This document shows positions 1,068 to 6,616 of a DNA stretch of 64,000 nt, piece after piece. This DNA is from Pseudomonas aeruginosa PAO1. Its GTDB lineage: Bacteria; Pseudomonadota; Gammaproteobacteria; Pseudomonadales; Pseudomonadaceae. Positions within the stretch are counted from its first letter, which is position 1. Each line of letters starts with the position of its first letter. Position numbers and translations under genes: made by a program. Location of the stretch: the NCBI RefSeq assembly GCF_000006765.1, contig NC_002516.2; one strand, 5' to 3'. The notes beneath the pieces are model-generated. The model ran no database searches. It was not told the DNA's origin and saw only the letters and a list, made by a program, of their open reading frames with translations.

Positions 1068-2729
1068 CTAGTCCGCTTGCGCCCCCTGCGCCAGGGCGTT
1101 GCCGACGCCCACCAGCAGCGCCCGGGTCTGCGCCACGATGGCGCTGCGGTAGGCCTCGTAGCGGGCGTCGCTGATGGCGTTGTCGTTGCGCGCGCCGCCG
1201 CCGCTCGCCGGTACGCCGGTGTAGTAGTTGTTCATCACCGGGACATGGATGTGCCCGGCGGGAATCTCCAGGCGGAACGCGTCGCGCAGCACCGTGTTGC
1301 GGTAGGCGCTCTCGTTGGACAGGTAGTCGCCGCCACCGCCGTTGCGCGCGCAGATCCGTCGGTTCGGCGGGAGCACCAGGGAGGGATCGGGCATGGCGTT
1401 CATCACTCCGTTGGTCGGCACGTTTTCGGTGCGCGGGTTGGCGCAATCGGGGAAGAAGTCGTAGTTGGTGTGCCAGGTGACGTCGAAGCCTTCCGCGGCC
1501 TGGCTGGTAGCGCCCGGCGGCCGCTCGATGCCGCGCCAAGTATCGGCGGCGAGCAACTGGCGGACCGGCAGCGAGGCCTTGGAGAACTGTGCCGGCAGGT
1601 TCTGCCGCCAGCGGCTGGCGCTGTCGTAGCCGAGCCAGCGGCGCGGCGGGTTGATATTGCAGCCGGAGCCCCGCAGGGAAATCGGCGCGGTGCCGGGATT
1701 GGTCACGCTGCCCAGGGGAAGCACGTAGTTGGGCAAAGCGCTGTCGGCGGGGCAGTAGACGATGCCGTCGTTGCCGGCGGAGGAGCCGTGGAAGCGGCCG
1801 TTCCAGGCCTCCAGCCAGAACTGGTTGGCGCCGCCCTGGCTGATGGTGATGGAGGCGTCGACCCGGCGCGGGCCGGGGCGGAACCAGGGGCCCAGGGTGT
1901 CTTCCTGCATGCCGCGGTTGAACGGGTCGTAGCTGACCGGCAACAGGTAGGCCTCGATACGCAGCAGGCTGCCGTCGGCCAGCCTGAACTCGCGGCCGTC
2001 CAGCGCAAGGGCGGTGGCGCCCGAGGGGTTGCCGTTGCGCAGGCCGGTGTTCGCCGTCCCGGGAGTGCCCAGGGTGAAGACGTCGAAGCCGCTGATGATC
2101 ATCCGCCGGTAGCGCGAGCCGTCGGCGGCGTAGCGGCGTGGCAGGTCGATGTCCAGCTGTCCGCGCGAGGCGCGTTCGAAGCGCCATTGCAGTGCCTGGG
2201 CCTGGGCCTTGCCGAGGTGGAAGGATGGCGCCCACTGGCGCAGGGTGCGGGTCATGTAGAGGCGCGTCCAGTAGAGCATGCGGTCATCGCTGGCCGGCAG
2301 CGCGCCGGCGGGAATGGCGCGGCGACCCTGGGCCCGGTCGACGGCGGCGCGCCACAGCGCGCGGCCCTCTTCGGTGACCAGCTTCAGTGCCTTGGCGTAG
2401 CTGGTGACCGGGGTGCGGCCGTCGGCGGCGCACAGGCGCTTGGCGAAGGCCGGTTCGAAGCCGTCGAAGCCGGCGCCCTTGACGATGCGCTCGGCCAGCG
2501 GCGTCTGGTCATGGGTGACGACGTTGGCGCCGCTGAACGGCAGCGGCGTGTCGAGCCGGCGCTCCTCGTAGGACAACGCTGCCTCGCGGTTCCAGGAGCA
2601 GGCGACGCTGGGCGGCTTGCGGGCGCCGGCGAGGTCGCCGTTGGCGGCCCAGCCGGCGCCGGGCAGCAGGGCTGCCGAGACGGCCAGGGTGAAGAGGGAG
2701 TATCGGCTTGCGTGACGGGCGTAGCGCAT
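1068..2729 (-). CDS. Secreted protein (553 aa) with C-terminal pyroglutamyl-peptidase I (peptidase C15)-like domain (PA0049-like)
   Basis: AGGAG RBS before ATG 2729; Sec signal (…GAGWA); C15 motifs IISGFDVF, NPSG, LLPVSY, LEAW, GNDG, LPVR, GDYLSNE, GHIHVP. Confidence 0.85.
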   Translation of the reverse strand: MRYARHASRYSLFTLAVSAALLPGAGWAANGDLAGARKPPSVACSWNREAALSYEERRLDTPLPFSGANVVTHDQTPLAERIVKGAGFDGFEPAFAKRLCAADGRTPVTSYAKALKLVTEEGRALWRAAVDRAQGRRAIPAGALPASDDRMLYWTRLYMTRTLRQWAPSFHLGKAQAQALQWRFERASRGQLDIDLPRRYAADGSRYRRMIISGFDVFTLGTPGTANTGLRNGNPSGATALALDGREFRLADGSLLRIEAYLLPVSYDPFNRGMQEDTLGPWFRPGPRRVDASITISQGGANQFWLEAWNGRFHGSSAGNDGIVYCPADSALPNYVLPLGSVTNPGTAPISLRGSGCNINPPRRWLGYDSASRWRQNLPAQFSKASLPVRQLLAADTWRGIERPPGATSQAAEGFDVTWHTNYDFFPDCANPRTENVPTNGVMNAMPDPSLVLPPNRRICARNGGGGDYLSNESAYRNTVLRDAFRLEIPAGHIHVPVMNNYYTGVPASGGGARNDNAISDARYEAYRSAIVAQTRALLVGVGNALAQGAQAD

Positions 2730-3338
2730 CGGGTGGACTCCTGTTCTTGTTCGGTTCATGGGTCGATCGGTGCGGCGGGCGGAGCGCGGGCGAGCGGCGC
2801 CCGCCGGCGGCGGGGGCCGGGACCGACGCAAGGTGCGTCGCGGGTTGCTGCGGTGGCGGACGGGAGGGCGGTGCTAGGGGGCGCGTGTCGCCGGTAGACG
2901 GAGGCGCGCGGAGGGAGGGTTGCGGGACGACGCGGAGGCGTCTGGGAAAGTCAGGTCCTTTGCCATGGATGCACCGATCGTTGTTCTTGCTGTTGTGGGG
3001 CGTCGGTGGGTGCACGGCCGGACTTCGCACCCGTGCGGCATTCTTGGAGGCGCCGGCGCGGGGCGTCCAACGAATTTATGTGGCCGCCGGGGATAGGAAA
3101 AGTTGATGGCGAACCGGTGCCGAAGCCCCCTGCCCCGGTACTTTCGCTGGCGCTGCGGCAATCCACCGCACTGGCGCGTTCGCTCGGGCTGGTCTTTGCT
3201 CTCCGGGGTCCGGCGGCTCGCCGGCGAGTCTTGCGGTGCGCCGCGAGCGGACGGGCGTTCGGTCCTTCTGCAGGCAAATGCCCTTGTTTTCGGAGAAGGA
3301 CACGGATCGTTGATCGCTGTTTCGACCAAGGAGGTCAG

Positions 3339-3479
3339 ATGAAAAGGAAGATGCTGGCGGCTTCGCTGCTGCTGTGGATGTTCTCGCTGACGGCGCAGGC
3401 GGACTGCGCGGTGCTCGGGCCGGGGGAAGATCCCTGCGCGGGCCCGGTGCTGGGACCGACCGTCTGCGAGTGCCCGTGA
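3339..3479 (+). CDS. Small secreted Cys-rich peptide 1 (46 aa; PA0050-like)
   Basis: AGGAGG 3329-3334 then ATG; MKRKMLAASLLLWMFSLTAQA signal followed by DCAVLGPGEDPCAGPVLGPTVCECP. Confidence 0.9.
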   Translation: MKRKMLAASLLLWMFSLTAQADCAVLGPGEDPCAGPVLGPTVCECP

Positions 3480-3540
3480 TGACCGACTGTACCCTCGACC
3501 AGGGACAGGGAGCGTTCGATTACCAACCAGGAGGTTGCAA

Positions 3541-3678
3541 ATGAAGAAAGTACTGTTGGCTGTGTTCCTGCTCTGTGGCTTCTCTCTTACCGCCCAGGCC
3601 GCGTGCCCGGTTTTCGGCCCGTCCGAGGACCCGTGCAGCGGGCCGGTGTTCGGTCCGTCGACCTGCGAATGCCCTTGA
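3541..3678 (+). CDS. Small secreted Cys-rich peptide 2 (45 aa), paralog of peptide 1; absent from the ORF track
   Basis: Hand translation: AGGAGG 3529-3534; MKKVLLAVFLLCGFSLTAQA then ACPVFGPSEDPCSGPVFGPSTCECP, stop TGA. Confidence 0.9.
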   Translation: MKKVLLAVFLLCGFSLTAQAACPVFGPSEDPCSGPVFGPSTCECP

Positions 3679-3691
3679 GGTAGGTCGTCTG

Positions 3692-3718
3692 GCGGGCCCG
3701 GTGCAGCGGGCCCGCTTC
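3692..3718 (+). terminator. Hairpin after peptide 2, probable terminator
   Basis: GCGGGCCCG-gtgcag-CGGGCCCGC is a perfect 9-bp stem; the U-tail (TTCC) is weak. Confidence 0.5.
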
Positions 3719-3839
3719 CGGATGTATCGCTCGCTCGAAGTTGCCTTCTTTAATTCTCCATTCCCCGCGCCGCCCTACTTTTCCCGCTCGTCCATCGTCG
3801 CGTCGAACGTTGCCACGAAATCAGCGTCGATGGACAACT

Positions 3840-4130
3840 CTTATATTCAATAGTTGTACGATCTGAGTTTGTTGTAGTCATTTGCTTAGTTGGCTATTCA
3901 TATGATTGCCGTAAAGCAATTATAAGTTTAATTGGATTAGCCTTCTAAGTCTTTGGAAAGAGCCGTGAACGACCCTGTAATATCTGGTTGTAGAGCCGCG
4001 TAATGATGTTTCAGGATATTTCATTAATTTTGTAGATTATTGTTTTTCCTTTGTTTTTTTAAAAACAGCTACCAGATTTAGATGGATATTAATTAACTCG
4101 GCCACGTTTTTTCCTGTTCTATCATTGGCC
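3840..4130. promoter_or_regulatory. AT-rich phzH upstream region with two las/rhl-box-like 16-mers
   Basis: Hand-counted 60-nt lines give 22-45% GC; CTACCAGATTTAGATG (4069-4084, +) and CAACCAGATATTACAG (3975-3990, -) resemble the phzA1 box as I recall it (CTACCAGATCTTGTAG). Confidence 0.45.
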
Positions 4131-4302
4131 TTCCTTGGGCGCAGGCCTGCCGAAACTGCTTATCTTCAGGTCCTCGAAAAGTTCATACATCGACCGCCTT
4201 GGGCGAAGCATTCGTACGCCGGAAATCGTCCGGCCGCACGGATGTTTTCAGCATGTTCTCTGGATGAGTTTCCCGATAAACATCAATTATAGGAGTTTCC
4301 CT

Positions 4303-6135
4303 ATGTGCGGTCTCGCGGGTTGGGTGGATTACACGCGCAAGCTCGACGACGAATTTCCGGCGATCTTCGCCATGACCGATACGCTCGCCTTGCGCGGGCC
4401 GGATGCCGAGGGCATCTGGAAGCACCGCAACGCCCTGCTGGGTCACCGGCGGCTGGCGGTCATCGACCTCAGCGGCGGCGTGCAGCCGATGTCCTATCGC
4501 TTTCCCACCGGCCAGGAGGTCACCCTCGTCTACACCGGCGAGGTGTACAACCACGATGCCCTGCGCGAGCGGTTGCGCCGGGCCGGACATGAGTTCCGCA
4601 CCCGCAGCGATACCGAGGTGGTCCTGCACGCCTATCTGCAATGGGGCGAGCGTTGTTGCGAGTACCTGACCGGGATGTTCGCCTTCGCCGTCTTCGATGG
4701 CCGCGACGGCCACCTGCTGCTGGTGCGCGACCGCCTGGGCATCAAGCCGCTGTATTACGCGCGGCACCGCGAGGGACTGCTGTTCGGCTCGGAGATCAAG
4801 TCCATCCTGGCGCATCCGGAATTCGCCGCCAGGCTCGACGCGGTCGGCCTGGTCGACCTCCTGACGCTGTCCCGGGGCACTTCGCAGACGCCGTTCCGCG
4901 AGGTCCAGGAACTGCTGCCCGGCCACCTGCTGTCCTGGCGTCCCAATTCCCAGGCGAAGTTGCGCCGCTACTGGGAGGTGCGCCGCCAGGAGCATGCCGA
5001 CGACCTGCAGAGCACCGTGCAGCGCACCCGCGAACTGGTCACCCGCGCCCTGGGGGCGCAATTGCACGCCGACGTTCCGGTGTGTTCGCTGCTATCGGGT
5101 GGGCTCGATTCGACCGCCCTGACCGGCATCGCCCAGCGCATCGCGAAGGCGGAGCACGGCGGCGACATCAATTCGTTCTCGGTGGACTTCGTCGGCCAGG
5201 CCGAGCAGTTCCGCAGCGACGACCTGCGTCCCGACCAGGACCAGCCGTTCGCCCTGCTGGCCGCGCAGTACATCGGCAGCCGTCATCGCACCGTGCTCAT
5301 CGACAATGCCGAACTGGTCTGCGAACGAGCGCGCGAAGAGGTATTCCGGGCCAAGGACGTACCTTTCACCTTCGGCGACATGGATACCTCGCTGCACCTG
5401 ATGTTCGGCGAGATCCGCCGGCATTCCACGGTGGCCATCTCCGGTGAAGGCGCCGACGAGCTGTTCGGTGGCTACGGCTGGTTCCGCGATCCGCAGGCGG
5501 TGGCTGCGGCGCGCTTCCCCTGGGCCTCCAGGGTGCGCCTGCCGGCCGGCTTCATCGACGCCGGTTTCAACCGCCGCTGCGATCTCCTCCAGTACCAGCA
5601 GGCCAGCTACGACGATGGGCTGCGCCAGGTCGAACACCTGGCCGGCGACAGCCCGGAGGAGCGGCGGATGCGCGAGTTCAGCCACCTGCATCTGAAGCGC
5701 TGGATGGTGCTGCTGCTCGAACGCAAGGATCGCCTGAGCATGTGCAACGGCCTGGAGGTGCGGGTGCCCTACACCGACCATGAGCTGGTGGAGTACGTCT
5801 ACAACGTGCCCTGGTCGATCAAGAGCCGGGACGGCGAGGAGAAGTGGCTGCTCAAGCGGGCCTGCGCCGACTATGTCCCGGAAGCCGTGCTCAAGCGCCG
5901 CAAGAGCCCTTATCCGACTTCTGCCAACCTCGGCTACGAGCGTTTCCTGCGCGGGAGCGTGCGGCGCCTGCTGGAGGACGCGGTGAACCCGGTGTTCGGC
6001 ATCGTTTCGCGAGAGTTCCTGGCCGCCGAACTGGAGCATCCGGAGGGGTACTTCAACACCCAGGTGAGCCGCCACAACCTGGAGACCGCACTGGCGCTGG
6101 AAGGCTGGCTCAGGTTGTACGGGCTCTCCGCCTGA
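4303..6135 (+). CDS. phzH: Phenazine-modifying glutamine amidotransferase (PCA to phenazine-1-carboxamide), asparagine synthetase-like
   Basis: AGGAG 4291-4295; N-terminal MCG (Ntn nucleophile), GHRRLAVID, SGGLDS, SGEGADELFGGY; locus position. Confidence 0.93.
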   Translation: MCGLAGWVDYTRKLDDEFPAIFAMTDTLALRGPDAEGIWKHRNALLGHRRLAVIDLSGGVQPMSYRFPTGQEVTLVYTGEVYNHDALRERLRRAGHEFRTRSDTEVVLHAYLQWGERCCEYLTGMFAFAVFDGRDGHLLLVRDRLGIKPLYYARHREGLLFGSEIKSILAHPEFAARLDAVGLVDLLTLSRGTSQTPFREVQELLPGHLLSWRPNSQAKLRRYWEVRRQEHADDLQSTVQRTRELVTRALGAQLHADVPVCSLLSGGLDSTALTGIAQRIAKAEHGGDINSFSVDFVGQAEQFRSDDLRPDQDQPFALLAAQYIGSRHRTVLIDNAELVCERAREEVFRAKDVPFTFGDMDTSLHLMFGEIRRHSTVAISGEGADELFGGYGWFRDPQAVAAARFPWASRVRLPAGFIDAGFNRRCDLLQYQQASYDDGLRQVEHLAGDSPEERRMREFSHLHLKRWMVLLLERKDRLSMCNGLEVRVPYTDHELVEYVYNVPWSIKSRDGEEKWLLKRACADYVPEAVLKRRKSPYPTSANLGYERFLRGSVRRLLEDAVNPVFGIVSREFLAAELEHPEGYFNTQVSRHNLETALALEGWLRLYGLSA

Positions 6136-6187
6136 GCGTGACGCGGGGCGTGGCGGGTTCGGGCTGCTGTCCGGCCCGCCGGCGTCT

Positions 6188-6616
6188 TCAGGCGTCGGGC
6201 ATTTCGCCGCGTTCGCCGAGCCCCACCGGCATGCCTTCCACGCCGGCATGGAACAGCAGGGCTTCCACCGGTTCGGCCCCGGCTATCAGGCGATGGATGA
6301 TGTTCATCAGGCAACCCGCCGCCTCGCCTTCCAGCACCCGGGTGCTCTGGGCACCGTCGCGGGTCTCCAGGCGCAGTTCGCCCTTGAGCACGTAGAGCGC
6401 GCTGGGCATCGGATGGACCTGCCAGTCCAGGCGTTCGTGGGCGGCCAGGCTCAGGCGCTGCACGGTGAGCTGCGGCTGGCCGAGGGGATAGCCGAGGTAG
6501 AGCGAGCCGTTCCAGGCGCAGCCGCTGCGCAGCAGGGTTTCGCGGTGCGGACTGGTTGCGGCCGGGAGGTCGCGGCTGGGTGGGAACACATGCACGTGGC
6601 TGGGGCGAAGGTCCAT
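6188..6616 (-). CDS. Cupin-fold hypothetical protein (PA0052-like)
   Basis: WQVHP...LYVLKGEL and IIHRL cupin motifs; AGGA RBS. Confidence 0.75.
   Translation of the reverse strand: MDLRPSHVHVFPPSRDLPAATSPHRETLLRSGCAWNGSLYLGYPLGQPQLTVQRLSLAAHERLDWQVHPMPSALYVLKGELRLETRDGAQSTRVLEGEAAGCLMNIIHRLIAGAEPVEALLFHAGVEGMPVGLGERGEMPDA

Follow-up and report, generated by a model that had tools for sequence, protein, structure and literature searches.

A tandem pair of PA0050-family genes in Pseudomonas aeruginosa PAO1 with predicted exported four-cysteine peptides and conserved RsmA-type leaders

Two small genes lie in tandem at positions 3,339 to 3,678 of the window, by which we mean the whole 64,000-nucleotide (nt) stretch of Pseudomonas aeruginosa PAO1 DNA analysed here (contig NC_002516.2 of assembly GCF_000006765.1). 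Referred to as gene A and gene B, they encode paralogous members of the PA0050 family, each predicted to be the precursor of a 25-residue exported peptide with four cysteines. Each gene has its own leader with a hairpin at the ribosome-binding site, and a GC-rich hairpin follows gene B. The features of the pair are as follows.

3292-3338, plus strand: leader of gene A, with GGA at 3292, 3298, 3304 and 3330
3324-3327 / 3333-3336, plus strand: stem of the gene A ribosome-binding-site hairpin (GACC-AAGGA-GGTC), loop AAGGA at 3328-3332
3339-3479, plus strand: gene A (open reading frame ORF1), 46 amino acids, ATG at 3339, stop codon at 3477-3479
3339-3401, plus strand: predicted signal peptide of gene A, MKRKMLAASLLLWMFSLTAQA, with the mature 25-mer encoded at 3402-3476
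3480-3540, plus strand: leader of gene B between the two genes, with GGA at 3503, 3509 and 3530
3524-3528 / 3533-3537, plus strand: stem of the gene B ribosome-binding-site hairpin (CAACC-AGGA-GGTTG), loop AGGA at 3529-3532
3541-3678, plus strand: gene B (ORF2), 45 amino acids, ATG at 3541, stop codon at 3676-3678
3541-3600, plus strand: predicted signal peptide of gene B, MKKVLLAVFLLCGFSLTAQA, with the mature 25-mer encoded at 3601-3675
3692-3700 / 3707-3715, plus strand: end hairpin, GC-rich, stem of 9 base pairs (bp), all G/C, 6-nt loop, followed by a weak T tail only

The gene layout described in the initial annotation is borne out by the sequence. Two reading frames of 46 and 45 amino acids are separated by a gap of 61 nt (3480-3540), each has an AGGAGG ribosome-binding site (3329-3334 for A, 3529-3534 for B), and a 9-bp hairpin follows the pair. 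An in-frame TTG at 3535 provides a possible two-residue extension of ORF2. Both products begin with a Sec-type signal that ends in SLTAQA, and the predicted mature 25-mers are exactly as claimed, DCAVLGPGEDPCAGPVLGPTVCECP for A and ACPVFGPSEDPCSGPVFGPSTCECP for B, with the shared cysteine spacing C-x9-C-x9-C-x-C-P. Precursors for Sec and signal peptidase I were recognised by pattern, from a basic n-region, a hydrophobic core of 10-15 residues and small residues at -3 and -1 (A-x-A); both ORFs show all of these elements, with MKRK or MKK at the start, 13 hydrophobic residues and T-A-Q-A at the end, and the alanines at -3 and -1 do not vary among 34 sequences. The mature peptides are acidic (isoelectric point, pI, ∼4; ∼2.4-2.5 kDa), lack Lys, Arg and His altogether, and contain 5-6 Pro, 3-4 Gly and 4 Cys each. 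Their calculated monoisotopic masses, assuming two disulfides, are 2394.00 Da for A and 2477.96 Da for B, and the reduced forms would be 4.03 Da heavier. Judged from these sequence characteristics, A and B are almost certainly real exported peptides.

Both ORFs are real paralogous genes under strong purifying selection. In reciprocal tblastn within the window the mature peptides A and B find one another with E ∼1e-9, the next best match having E of at least 0.085, and across the 24 codons of the mature cores they differ by 12 synonymous and 12 non-synonymous changes (synonymous divergence dS 1.6, non-synonymous divergence dN 0.27, ratio omega 0.17). A scan of one genome per species yielded 24 loci, cited below by our own labels (L001 and so on) and all from Pseudomonas except one record labelled Pantoea. 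B-type orthologs occur at all 24 of these species loci; A followed by B in tandem is seen at 13, and a single B-like gene at the other 11. Type A reads AQA-DCAVLGP... and type B AQA-[A/S]CPVFGP..., the hyphen marking the predicted cleavage, and within one peptide the two repeats have the same hydrophobic residue following Val (Leu-Leu in A, Phe-Phe in B). Given that A and B form separate clades in the protein tree (support 99/99), the duplication is older than the species splits. The distance from A to B is 31-63 nt across all 14 paired loci, and gene A is visibly decayed upstream of B in L015-L017. The one locus from outside Pseudomonas by its label, L011 (NZ_VWXI01000014.1, Pantoea sp. Cy-639), carries a full A-B pair and a YcaO protein 93% identical to that of P. 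entomophila; this record is probably a mislabelled or contaminated, putida-group-like Pseudomonas assembly.

The initial annotation had proposed that selection acts on the peptide, and the substitution pattern upholds that proposal, with dN/dS far from 1. The mean non-synonymous to synonymous ratio (pN/pS) in the mature core is 0.12 for A and 0.155 for B, as compared to 0.32-0.38 in the signal region. Comparison of gene A of the window with gene A of L001-L004 reveals 11-15 synonymous and no non-synonymous differences over 24 codons, the extreme being L003 with 15 against none (Fisher p 3e-12). In the alignment of 34 sequences, drawn from the 24 species loci and the window, the columns A-3, A-1, C1, V, G, P, D, P, C2, V, G, P, C3 and C4 are invariant, so that the cysteine pattern and the two V-(L/F)-G-P repeats are retained in the homologs. 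The residue between C3 and C4 varies (E/V/Q), as do the charged residues, whereas the cysteines, V-(L/F)-G-P and D-P are fixed. Frameshifts are rare, each frameshifted form of ORF1 occurring on 1-10 contigs compared with at least 1000 for the intact gene. Those forms, several of them public P. aeruginosa proteins (P0018, P0020-P0022, P0014), depart from the intact sequence after GPG, at the run of five G at 3422-3426, and represent either sequencing error or a rare slippage variant.

The pair belongs to the NCBIfam family NF047882, "PA0050 family protein" (hypothetical protein PA0050 of PAO1), a 45-position profile with a curated cutoff of 45 bits that is matched by ORF1 with 98.4 bits and by ORF2 with 94 bits, model positions 1-45 being covered. 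NF047882 lumps the paralog types A and B that are split here. A Pfam scan of both peptides, taken up to an E value of 1, gave no match. The exact sequences of ORF1 and ORF2 are each found on at least 1000 public contigs (ORF1 in 42206 index blocks), and both are called as genes in NCBI assemblies, each by the name "PA0050 family protein". With both ORFs annotated and named in public records, the pair is catalogued rather than missed, and the initial remark that one of them had escaped the track of reading frames does not extend to public annotation. The family is already known to databases, under a name that carries no function. The pair is part of the P. aeruginosa core genome and among the most constrained small genes of the genus; PA0050 is listed among the genes with full protein-level conservation (PMC2864246). 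In the literature searched, "PA0050" appears in gene tables only, no functional study was found, and "PA14_00630" gave no match.

The leaders of the two genes carry a regulatory signature that the initial annotation had overlooked. Paired GGA motifs, one of them displayed in a hairpin loop over the ribosome-binding site, are the hallmark of binding sites for proteins of the CsrA/RsmA family. The leader of A is homologous to that of B, and both are conserved across species. In the window the GGA motifs are placed at -35 and -9 in A and at -38/-32 and -11 in B, with ∼21-25 nt between the motifs; in nearly all leaders across the species, one GGA falls at -32 to -35 as part of CA(N)GGA and the ribosome-binding site holds another. 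Of 36 leaders, 29 have a stem of 4 bp or more with A(A)GGA in its loop, the outer pair being G-C, G-U or A-U, and in the leader L003_A a double change (GATC...GATC) alters the Shine-Dalgarno sequence itself while the stem is kept. The leaders thus have the arrangement expected by sequence of an RsmA/CsrA target, that is, at least two A(N)GGA within ∼10-60 nt of each other, one of them over the Shine-Dalgarno in a hairpin loop. The window leaders fold no better than shuffled sequence (z +1.2 and +0.6), and an Rfam scan of window positions 2800-4300 gave no match. Beside this, the start codon of gene A is TTG or GTG rather than ATG at several loci (L001-L004 at 6001, L007/L008 at 6001), with the RsmA-type hairpin retained; such weak starts may add to a low basal translation.

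Published gene lists bear on the same point. The genes of the H1 type VI secretion system (H1-T6SS) and PA0277 are known to be repressed by RsmA. In biofilm transcriptomes PA0050 rises alongside H1-T6SS genes and PA0277 (PMC9993114). PA0050 is also listed in the RsmA regulon from the microarray study of Brencic and Lory 2009, as given in Table5 of PMC11882435, and it is a predicted RsmA target according to Kulkarni 2014 (Table5 of PMC11882435 and supplement of PMC4066749); PA0050 has four entries in Table5, of which these are two. A further gene table has it up in a mexT deletion. Considering the leader sequences together with these lists, we regard control of both genes by RsmA as probable.

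No hairpin intervenes between A and B in any of the 14 paired loci, and a strong hairpin stands 10-20 nt past the stop codon of B at almost every locus, its stem differing among species and a U tract being present in some. On this arrangement the pair is most likely one transcript, read as two independently RsmA-gated cistrons. The 60 nt around the end hairpin of the window have a folding energy of -32.4 kcal/mol (z = -2.5 compared with shuffles). A strict terminator scan did not call this hairpin, which lacks a T run, and found no canonical terminator. The hairpin is likely a terminator or a stabiliser of the mRNA.

Upstream of the leader of A, two further elements were recognised.

3246-3287, plus strand: 3' end of a third-copy relic, reading ...GRAFGPSAGKCPC..., in frame with ORF1 and adjoining the leader of A
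3169-3229, plus strand: conserved upstream block, CACTGGCGCG...CTGGTCTTTGCTCT...CCGGCGGCTCGCCGG

The relic aligns with the 3' end of gene B over 41 nt with a local score of 37, as compared to 18.3 +/- 2.6 (maximum 33) for 300 shuffles, and tblastn with peptide B returns 61.5% identity over 13 amino acids at 3246-3284. A relic-like stretch is also seen in the upstream alignment of L002/L003 and of the cichorii group, from which it follows that the array used to have more members. Alignment of the A unit with the B unit extends over their full length, leaders included, and the sequence relationships identify the locus as the product of repeated tandem duplication of a leader-plus-gene unit. The idea of a dedicated two-gene family, put forward at the outset, is therefore retained for the two paralogous coding genes and given up as a general description, considering the B-like gene alone at 11 of 24 loci and the relic of a third copy upstream. 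As to the block at 3169-3229, TGGTCTTTGCTGT together with a GC hairpin downstream of it aligns across A-bearing and cichorii-group loci; the block may serve as the promoter region, or it may be what is left of the 5' part of an earlier, decayed gene copy. A promoter consensus scan identified no sigma-70 promoter upstream of the pair, and a sigma-54 promoter or a las/rhl box was rejected for the upstream box, the spacings judged by eye having failed to fit.

Outside Pseudomonas, Burkholderia ubonensis and B. stagnalis carry divergent single copies (L030-L033, gene at 6001-6162 / 6001-6240), with AMP nucleosidase as the neighbour. In the leader DNA they hardly differ from the copies of the P. 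chlororaphis group (L023, L024), and this near-identity indicates horizontal transfer of the whole unit of leader, gene and terminator between Pseudomonas and Burkholderia.

By its neighbours, the region is the PA0045-PA0054 segment of P. aeruginosa. The neighbours are CsgG, DUF4810 and GNA1162-like genes, an HTH_3 regulator, a gene for a PA0049_N-domain protein on the opposite strand, a phzH-like asparagine-synthase homolog downstream, and the RNA 2'-phosphotransferase gene kptA. The PA0049_N-domain gene (1068-2831, minus strand) is divergent from the pair, and its product has a signal-like N-terminus; the start varies, public records giving 502 or 553 amino acids compared with a maximal ORF of 587. 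Between the peptide operon and the phzH-like gene lies an AT-rich stretch (3800-4200; 32-41% GC compared with ∼65-74% around it), inside which the sole sigma-70-like match is found on the minus strand at 4063-4036; the stretch may have a regulatory role or may be a scar left by horizontal acquisition.

None of these neighbours accompanies the pair elsewhere. A tblastn search of nine window neighbours against the 24 loci, taken as 12-kb segments, returned no shared synteny, and all-against-all clustering of the ORFs at those loci showed neighbours in common only within single clades. Seven loci of the putida group have an OsmC-YcaO fusion directly upstream on the same strand (761 amino acids with a YcaO_C domain, at 3355-5637 of L007, ∼360 bp from the pair; also L006, L008-L011 and L022) and a MerR-methyltransferase fusion downstream; the link of OsmC-YcaO to cysteine-rich peptides is probably coincidental. 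In other clades the neighbour is an FMN reductase, a cupin, a nucleoside hydrolase, an HNH nuclease or a strictosidine-synthase-like protein. The 64-kb window holds no YcaO gene, and among the neighbours examined there was no MNIO or radical SAM enzyme and, in any lineage, no gene for a modifying enzyme, exporter, immunity protein, receptor or kinase, or metal resistance. Since no neighbour is conserved across lineages, the unit is self-contained, consisting of leader, gene A, leader, gene B and terminator hairpin. The lack of linked partner genes implies that the peptides do not depend on a maturase, exporter, immunity protein or receptor of their own encoded in the vicinity, and it counts against readings of the pair as modified peptides, bacteriocins or ligands of a dedicated signal receptor.

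Based on the collective evidence, the locus as a whole is best explained, by our modest preference, as a self-contained PA0050-family operon of ∼0.5 kb for RsmA-gated exported peptides. The precursor would be exported via Sec, and signal peptidase I would cleave it behind the invariant A-x-A to release an acidic 25-residue peptide into the periplasm. There the four invariant cysteines would probably be oxidised to two disulfides by DsbA. Formation of two disulfides is, from the cysteine pattern, somewhat favoured, and the product would be a rigid, Pro/Gly-rich mini-fold displaying two V-(L/F) hydrophobic pairs. In the absence of a linked exporter, the peptides most likely remain periplasmic or are carried out in vesicles. 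Expression would be restrained by RsmA, and probably by RsmN as well, repressing translation of both genes through binding at the GGA at ∼-33 and at the second GGA in the hairpin loop of the ribosome-binding site. Titration of RsmA by RsmY/RsmZ under GacS/GacA would then allow the peptides to be made at the same time as the other products of the regulon, among them those of the H1 type VI secretion genes and the Mag proteins.

What the mature peptides might do is suggested by which residues are fixed and which are not. Constancy of the cysteines, V-(L/F)-G-P and D-P, combined with variable charges, fits a mini-fold with a hydrophobic contact surface better than a chelation site, and the sequences suggest that a conserved protein partner exists. 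The peptide may, in what we regard as weak inference, bind a conserved envelope protein as a small inhibitor or modulator, a role that on sequence grounds comes close to being probable without quite reaching it. The leading guess within that role would be a double-loop inhibitor of chymotrypsin-, elastase- or subtilisin-type proteases, the contact residue being Leu in A and Phe in B. This guess accords with the internal repeat and with the anti-protease content of the RsmA regulon, represented by the Mag operon. By analogy, inhibition specifically of a protease is conceivable and, in our estimate, unlikely.

Several observations weigh against this explanation. An AlphaFold2 model of ORF2 from a 34-sequence alignment reached a mean predicted local distance difference test score (pLDDT) of 62.9, only the signal helix being modelled. 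A profile search of 1.84 billion representative proteins revealed no distant relatives, its 18 matches consisting of family members and frameshift read-throughs, together with two spurious repeat proteins, and a profile search of the PDB gave only a chance match at E 2.5. With neither fold nor homolog at hand, the protease-inhibitor idea draws only on the loop-like arrangement of Pro and Cys and on the regulon theme. Inhibitors directed at foreign proteases typically have variable contact residues, unlike the invariant V-(L/F)-G-P here. On the side of regulation, the GGAGG ribosome-binding site contains GGA anyway, making conservation of the motif partly trivial. PA0050 is absent from those parts of the RsmN RNA-immunoprecipitation sequencing (RIP-seq) supplements that were available to us, and the RsmA ChIPPAR list includes only the neighbour PA0049. 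A peak lying in the intergenic region that PA0049 shares with the pair could instead belong to the leader of gene A.

Among other explanations, metal binding in the periplasm survives best, as an unlikely alternative in which Cu(I), Zn(II) or Cd(II) would be chelated by the four thiolates together with acidic residues, buffering the cell against metal stress. Four invariant cysteines, including a C-terminal C-x-C, an invariant Asp, the acidic character without basic residues and the stand-alone genes that are usual for small metal binders all accord with it. DsbA normally oxidises periplasmic cysteines, however, and the peptides have no His or Met. It is the residue between C3 and C4 that varies and the hydrophobic V-(L/F)-G-P that is fixed, which points to a fold or a protein interface; moreover, metal-resistance genes are not linked in the lineages examined, and the papers naming PA0050 make no mention of metal regulation.

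Slightly less likely again would be a signal or regulatory ligand that, as MgrB does with PhoQ, binds a sensor kinase at its periplasmic domain, or binds some other regulator in the envelope, and feeds back on a signalling network, for example Gac/Rsm. Suitable size, export and membership in a global regulatory regulon argue in favour by analogy, and near-invariance suggests a conserved endogenous partner. Against it stand the lack of a linked receptor or kinase gene in every lineage and the predicted signal-peptidase cleavage that, unlike in MgrB, would leave the peptide unanchored.

The possibility of lipoproteins, with Cys1 as the lipid-modified +1 residue after cleavage by signal peptidase II and hence a membrane-anchored peptide of 24 residues, is improbable. 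It draws on the chlororaphis-group and Burkholderia copies, which read L-A-A-C or M-A-[A/S]-C and so have an acceptable lipobox ([LVI][ASTVI][GAS]-C), and on the UniRef label "Lipoprotein" of one P. cichorii member. Only those copies show the lipobox; the window genes read A-Q-A-D-C (A) and A-Q-A-A-C (B), in which the Asp at -1 rules out a lipobox and the Gln at -3 would be unusual for one. The A-x-A located one residue before Cys1 is common to all 34 sequences and fits signal peptidase I.

Still more improbable are precursors of a modified peptide natural product or bacteriocin, matured by a YcaO, MNIO, radical-SAM or lasso-type asparagine-synthase-like cyclase. The OsmC-YcaO fusion upstream of seven putida-group pairs and the asparagine-synthase homolog downstream of the window pair lend this its appeal. 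The YcaO link, however, is confined to one clade and so counts as one evolutionary event, and the phzH-like gene is a neighbour in no other species; no linked modifying enzyme, exporter or immunity gene was found in any lineage, and an acidic peptide with a Sec signal is unlike most such precursors. The candidate classes were rejected individually. A YcaO substrate would have its maturase adjacent across lineages, and the adjacency here is clade-limited. For a lasso peptide cluster, which would also hold a leader protease, the phzH-like gene scores 205 bits compared with the lasso cyclase cutoff of 525, but 586 compared with the asparagine synthase cutoff of 267. A bacteriocin or microcin would usually be cationic or hydrophobic, as against the mature pI of ∼4, and linked immunity or export genes are missing. 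The antimicrobial option of the initial annotation, taken as the cationic type, is unlikely on the same grounds and for want of Lys, Arg and His. Lastly, the transcript itself can hardly be the main product, as an RsmA sponge with seven GGA in ∼340 nt and the peptides secondary, because, dense as the motifs are in both leaders, the synonymous and non-synonymous pattern signifies selection on amino acids, above all in the mature part, and the leaders neither match Rfam nor fold better than shuffled sequence.

The family considered here is thus catalogued and without assigned function, and no surprising mechanism was found. New in the present analysis are the separation of two ancient paralog types, the recognition of the unit as mobile and self-contained, with transfer to Burkholderia, the third-copy relic, and the conserved RsmA-type sites predicted by sequence on both cistrons. 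A further new point is that, without Lys or Arg in the window's mature peptides, proteomics based on trypsin would miss them, a blind spot that may explain why they were overlooked. The Gac/Rsm switch governs chronic infection, biofilm formation and biocontrol traits; if the link to RsmA holds, the PA0050 peptides are an uncharacterised output of that switch. The unit is small, self-contained and easily synthesised chemically, and its function is open to direct testing. A speculative extension, less likely than not, would see in the peptides the founders of a novel class of disulfide-rich mini-proteins in bacteria, 25-residue double-loop effectors exported via Sec, produced only while Gac/Rsm is "on" and serving in the envelope as specific inhibitors or ligands of a conserved protein, with A (Leu) and B (Phe) having distinct specificities or forming a heterodimer. 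Possible partners would include proteases, whether periplasmic or of the host, cell-wall enzymes and sensor domains.

Regarding known systems, the leaders resemble the mRNAs of hcnA, tssA1, fha1 and magA, which are repressed by RsmA/RsmE/CsrA and in which the dimeric protein binds GGA motifs, one of them in a hairpin loop over the Shine-Dalgarno. The PA0050 leaders likewise have at least two GGA, the proximal one in a 4-5-nt loop of a 4-5-bp stem that holds the Shine-Dalgarno and is conserved with compensating changes; the PA0050 pair is unlike those mRNAs in having two successive cistrons, each with its own putative site. At the level of the peptides, MgrB, the 47-residue small protein of enterobacteria that inhibits PhoQ, has a precursor of about the same length, likewise begins with a hydrophobic segment and has cysteines in the periplasm that matter for its function. 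MgrB, however, keeps its N-terminal anchor, whereas the PA0050 peptides have the invariant A-x-A, no linked kinase and no sequence similarity to it. Bufferins, which bind copper and are modified by MNIO enzymes, are also small cysteine peptides delivered by a Sec signal to the proteobacterial periplasm; the PA0050 loci differ by having no MNIO (DUF692) or DUF2063 genes nearby, and the peptides match neither DUF2282 nor any other Pfam model. The Bowman-Birk and SFTI-type inhibitors offer an analogy in the repetition of a Pro loop bounded by Cys, with a hydrophobic candidate contact (Leu/Phe) in both loops. They are distinguished by C-x7-C loops compared with C-x9-C here, by the 14 cysteines of the Bowman-Birk type compared with four, and by the invariance of the PA0050 contacts; homology is lacking, and the Pfam scan placed neither peptide in the Bowman-Birk family at E up to 1. 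With the periplasmic anti-proteases of Pseudomonas, namely ecotin and the alpha-2-macroglobulin MagD, whose operon is an RsmA target, the PA0050 peptides would share, by analogy, the envelope location and the theme of the regulon.

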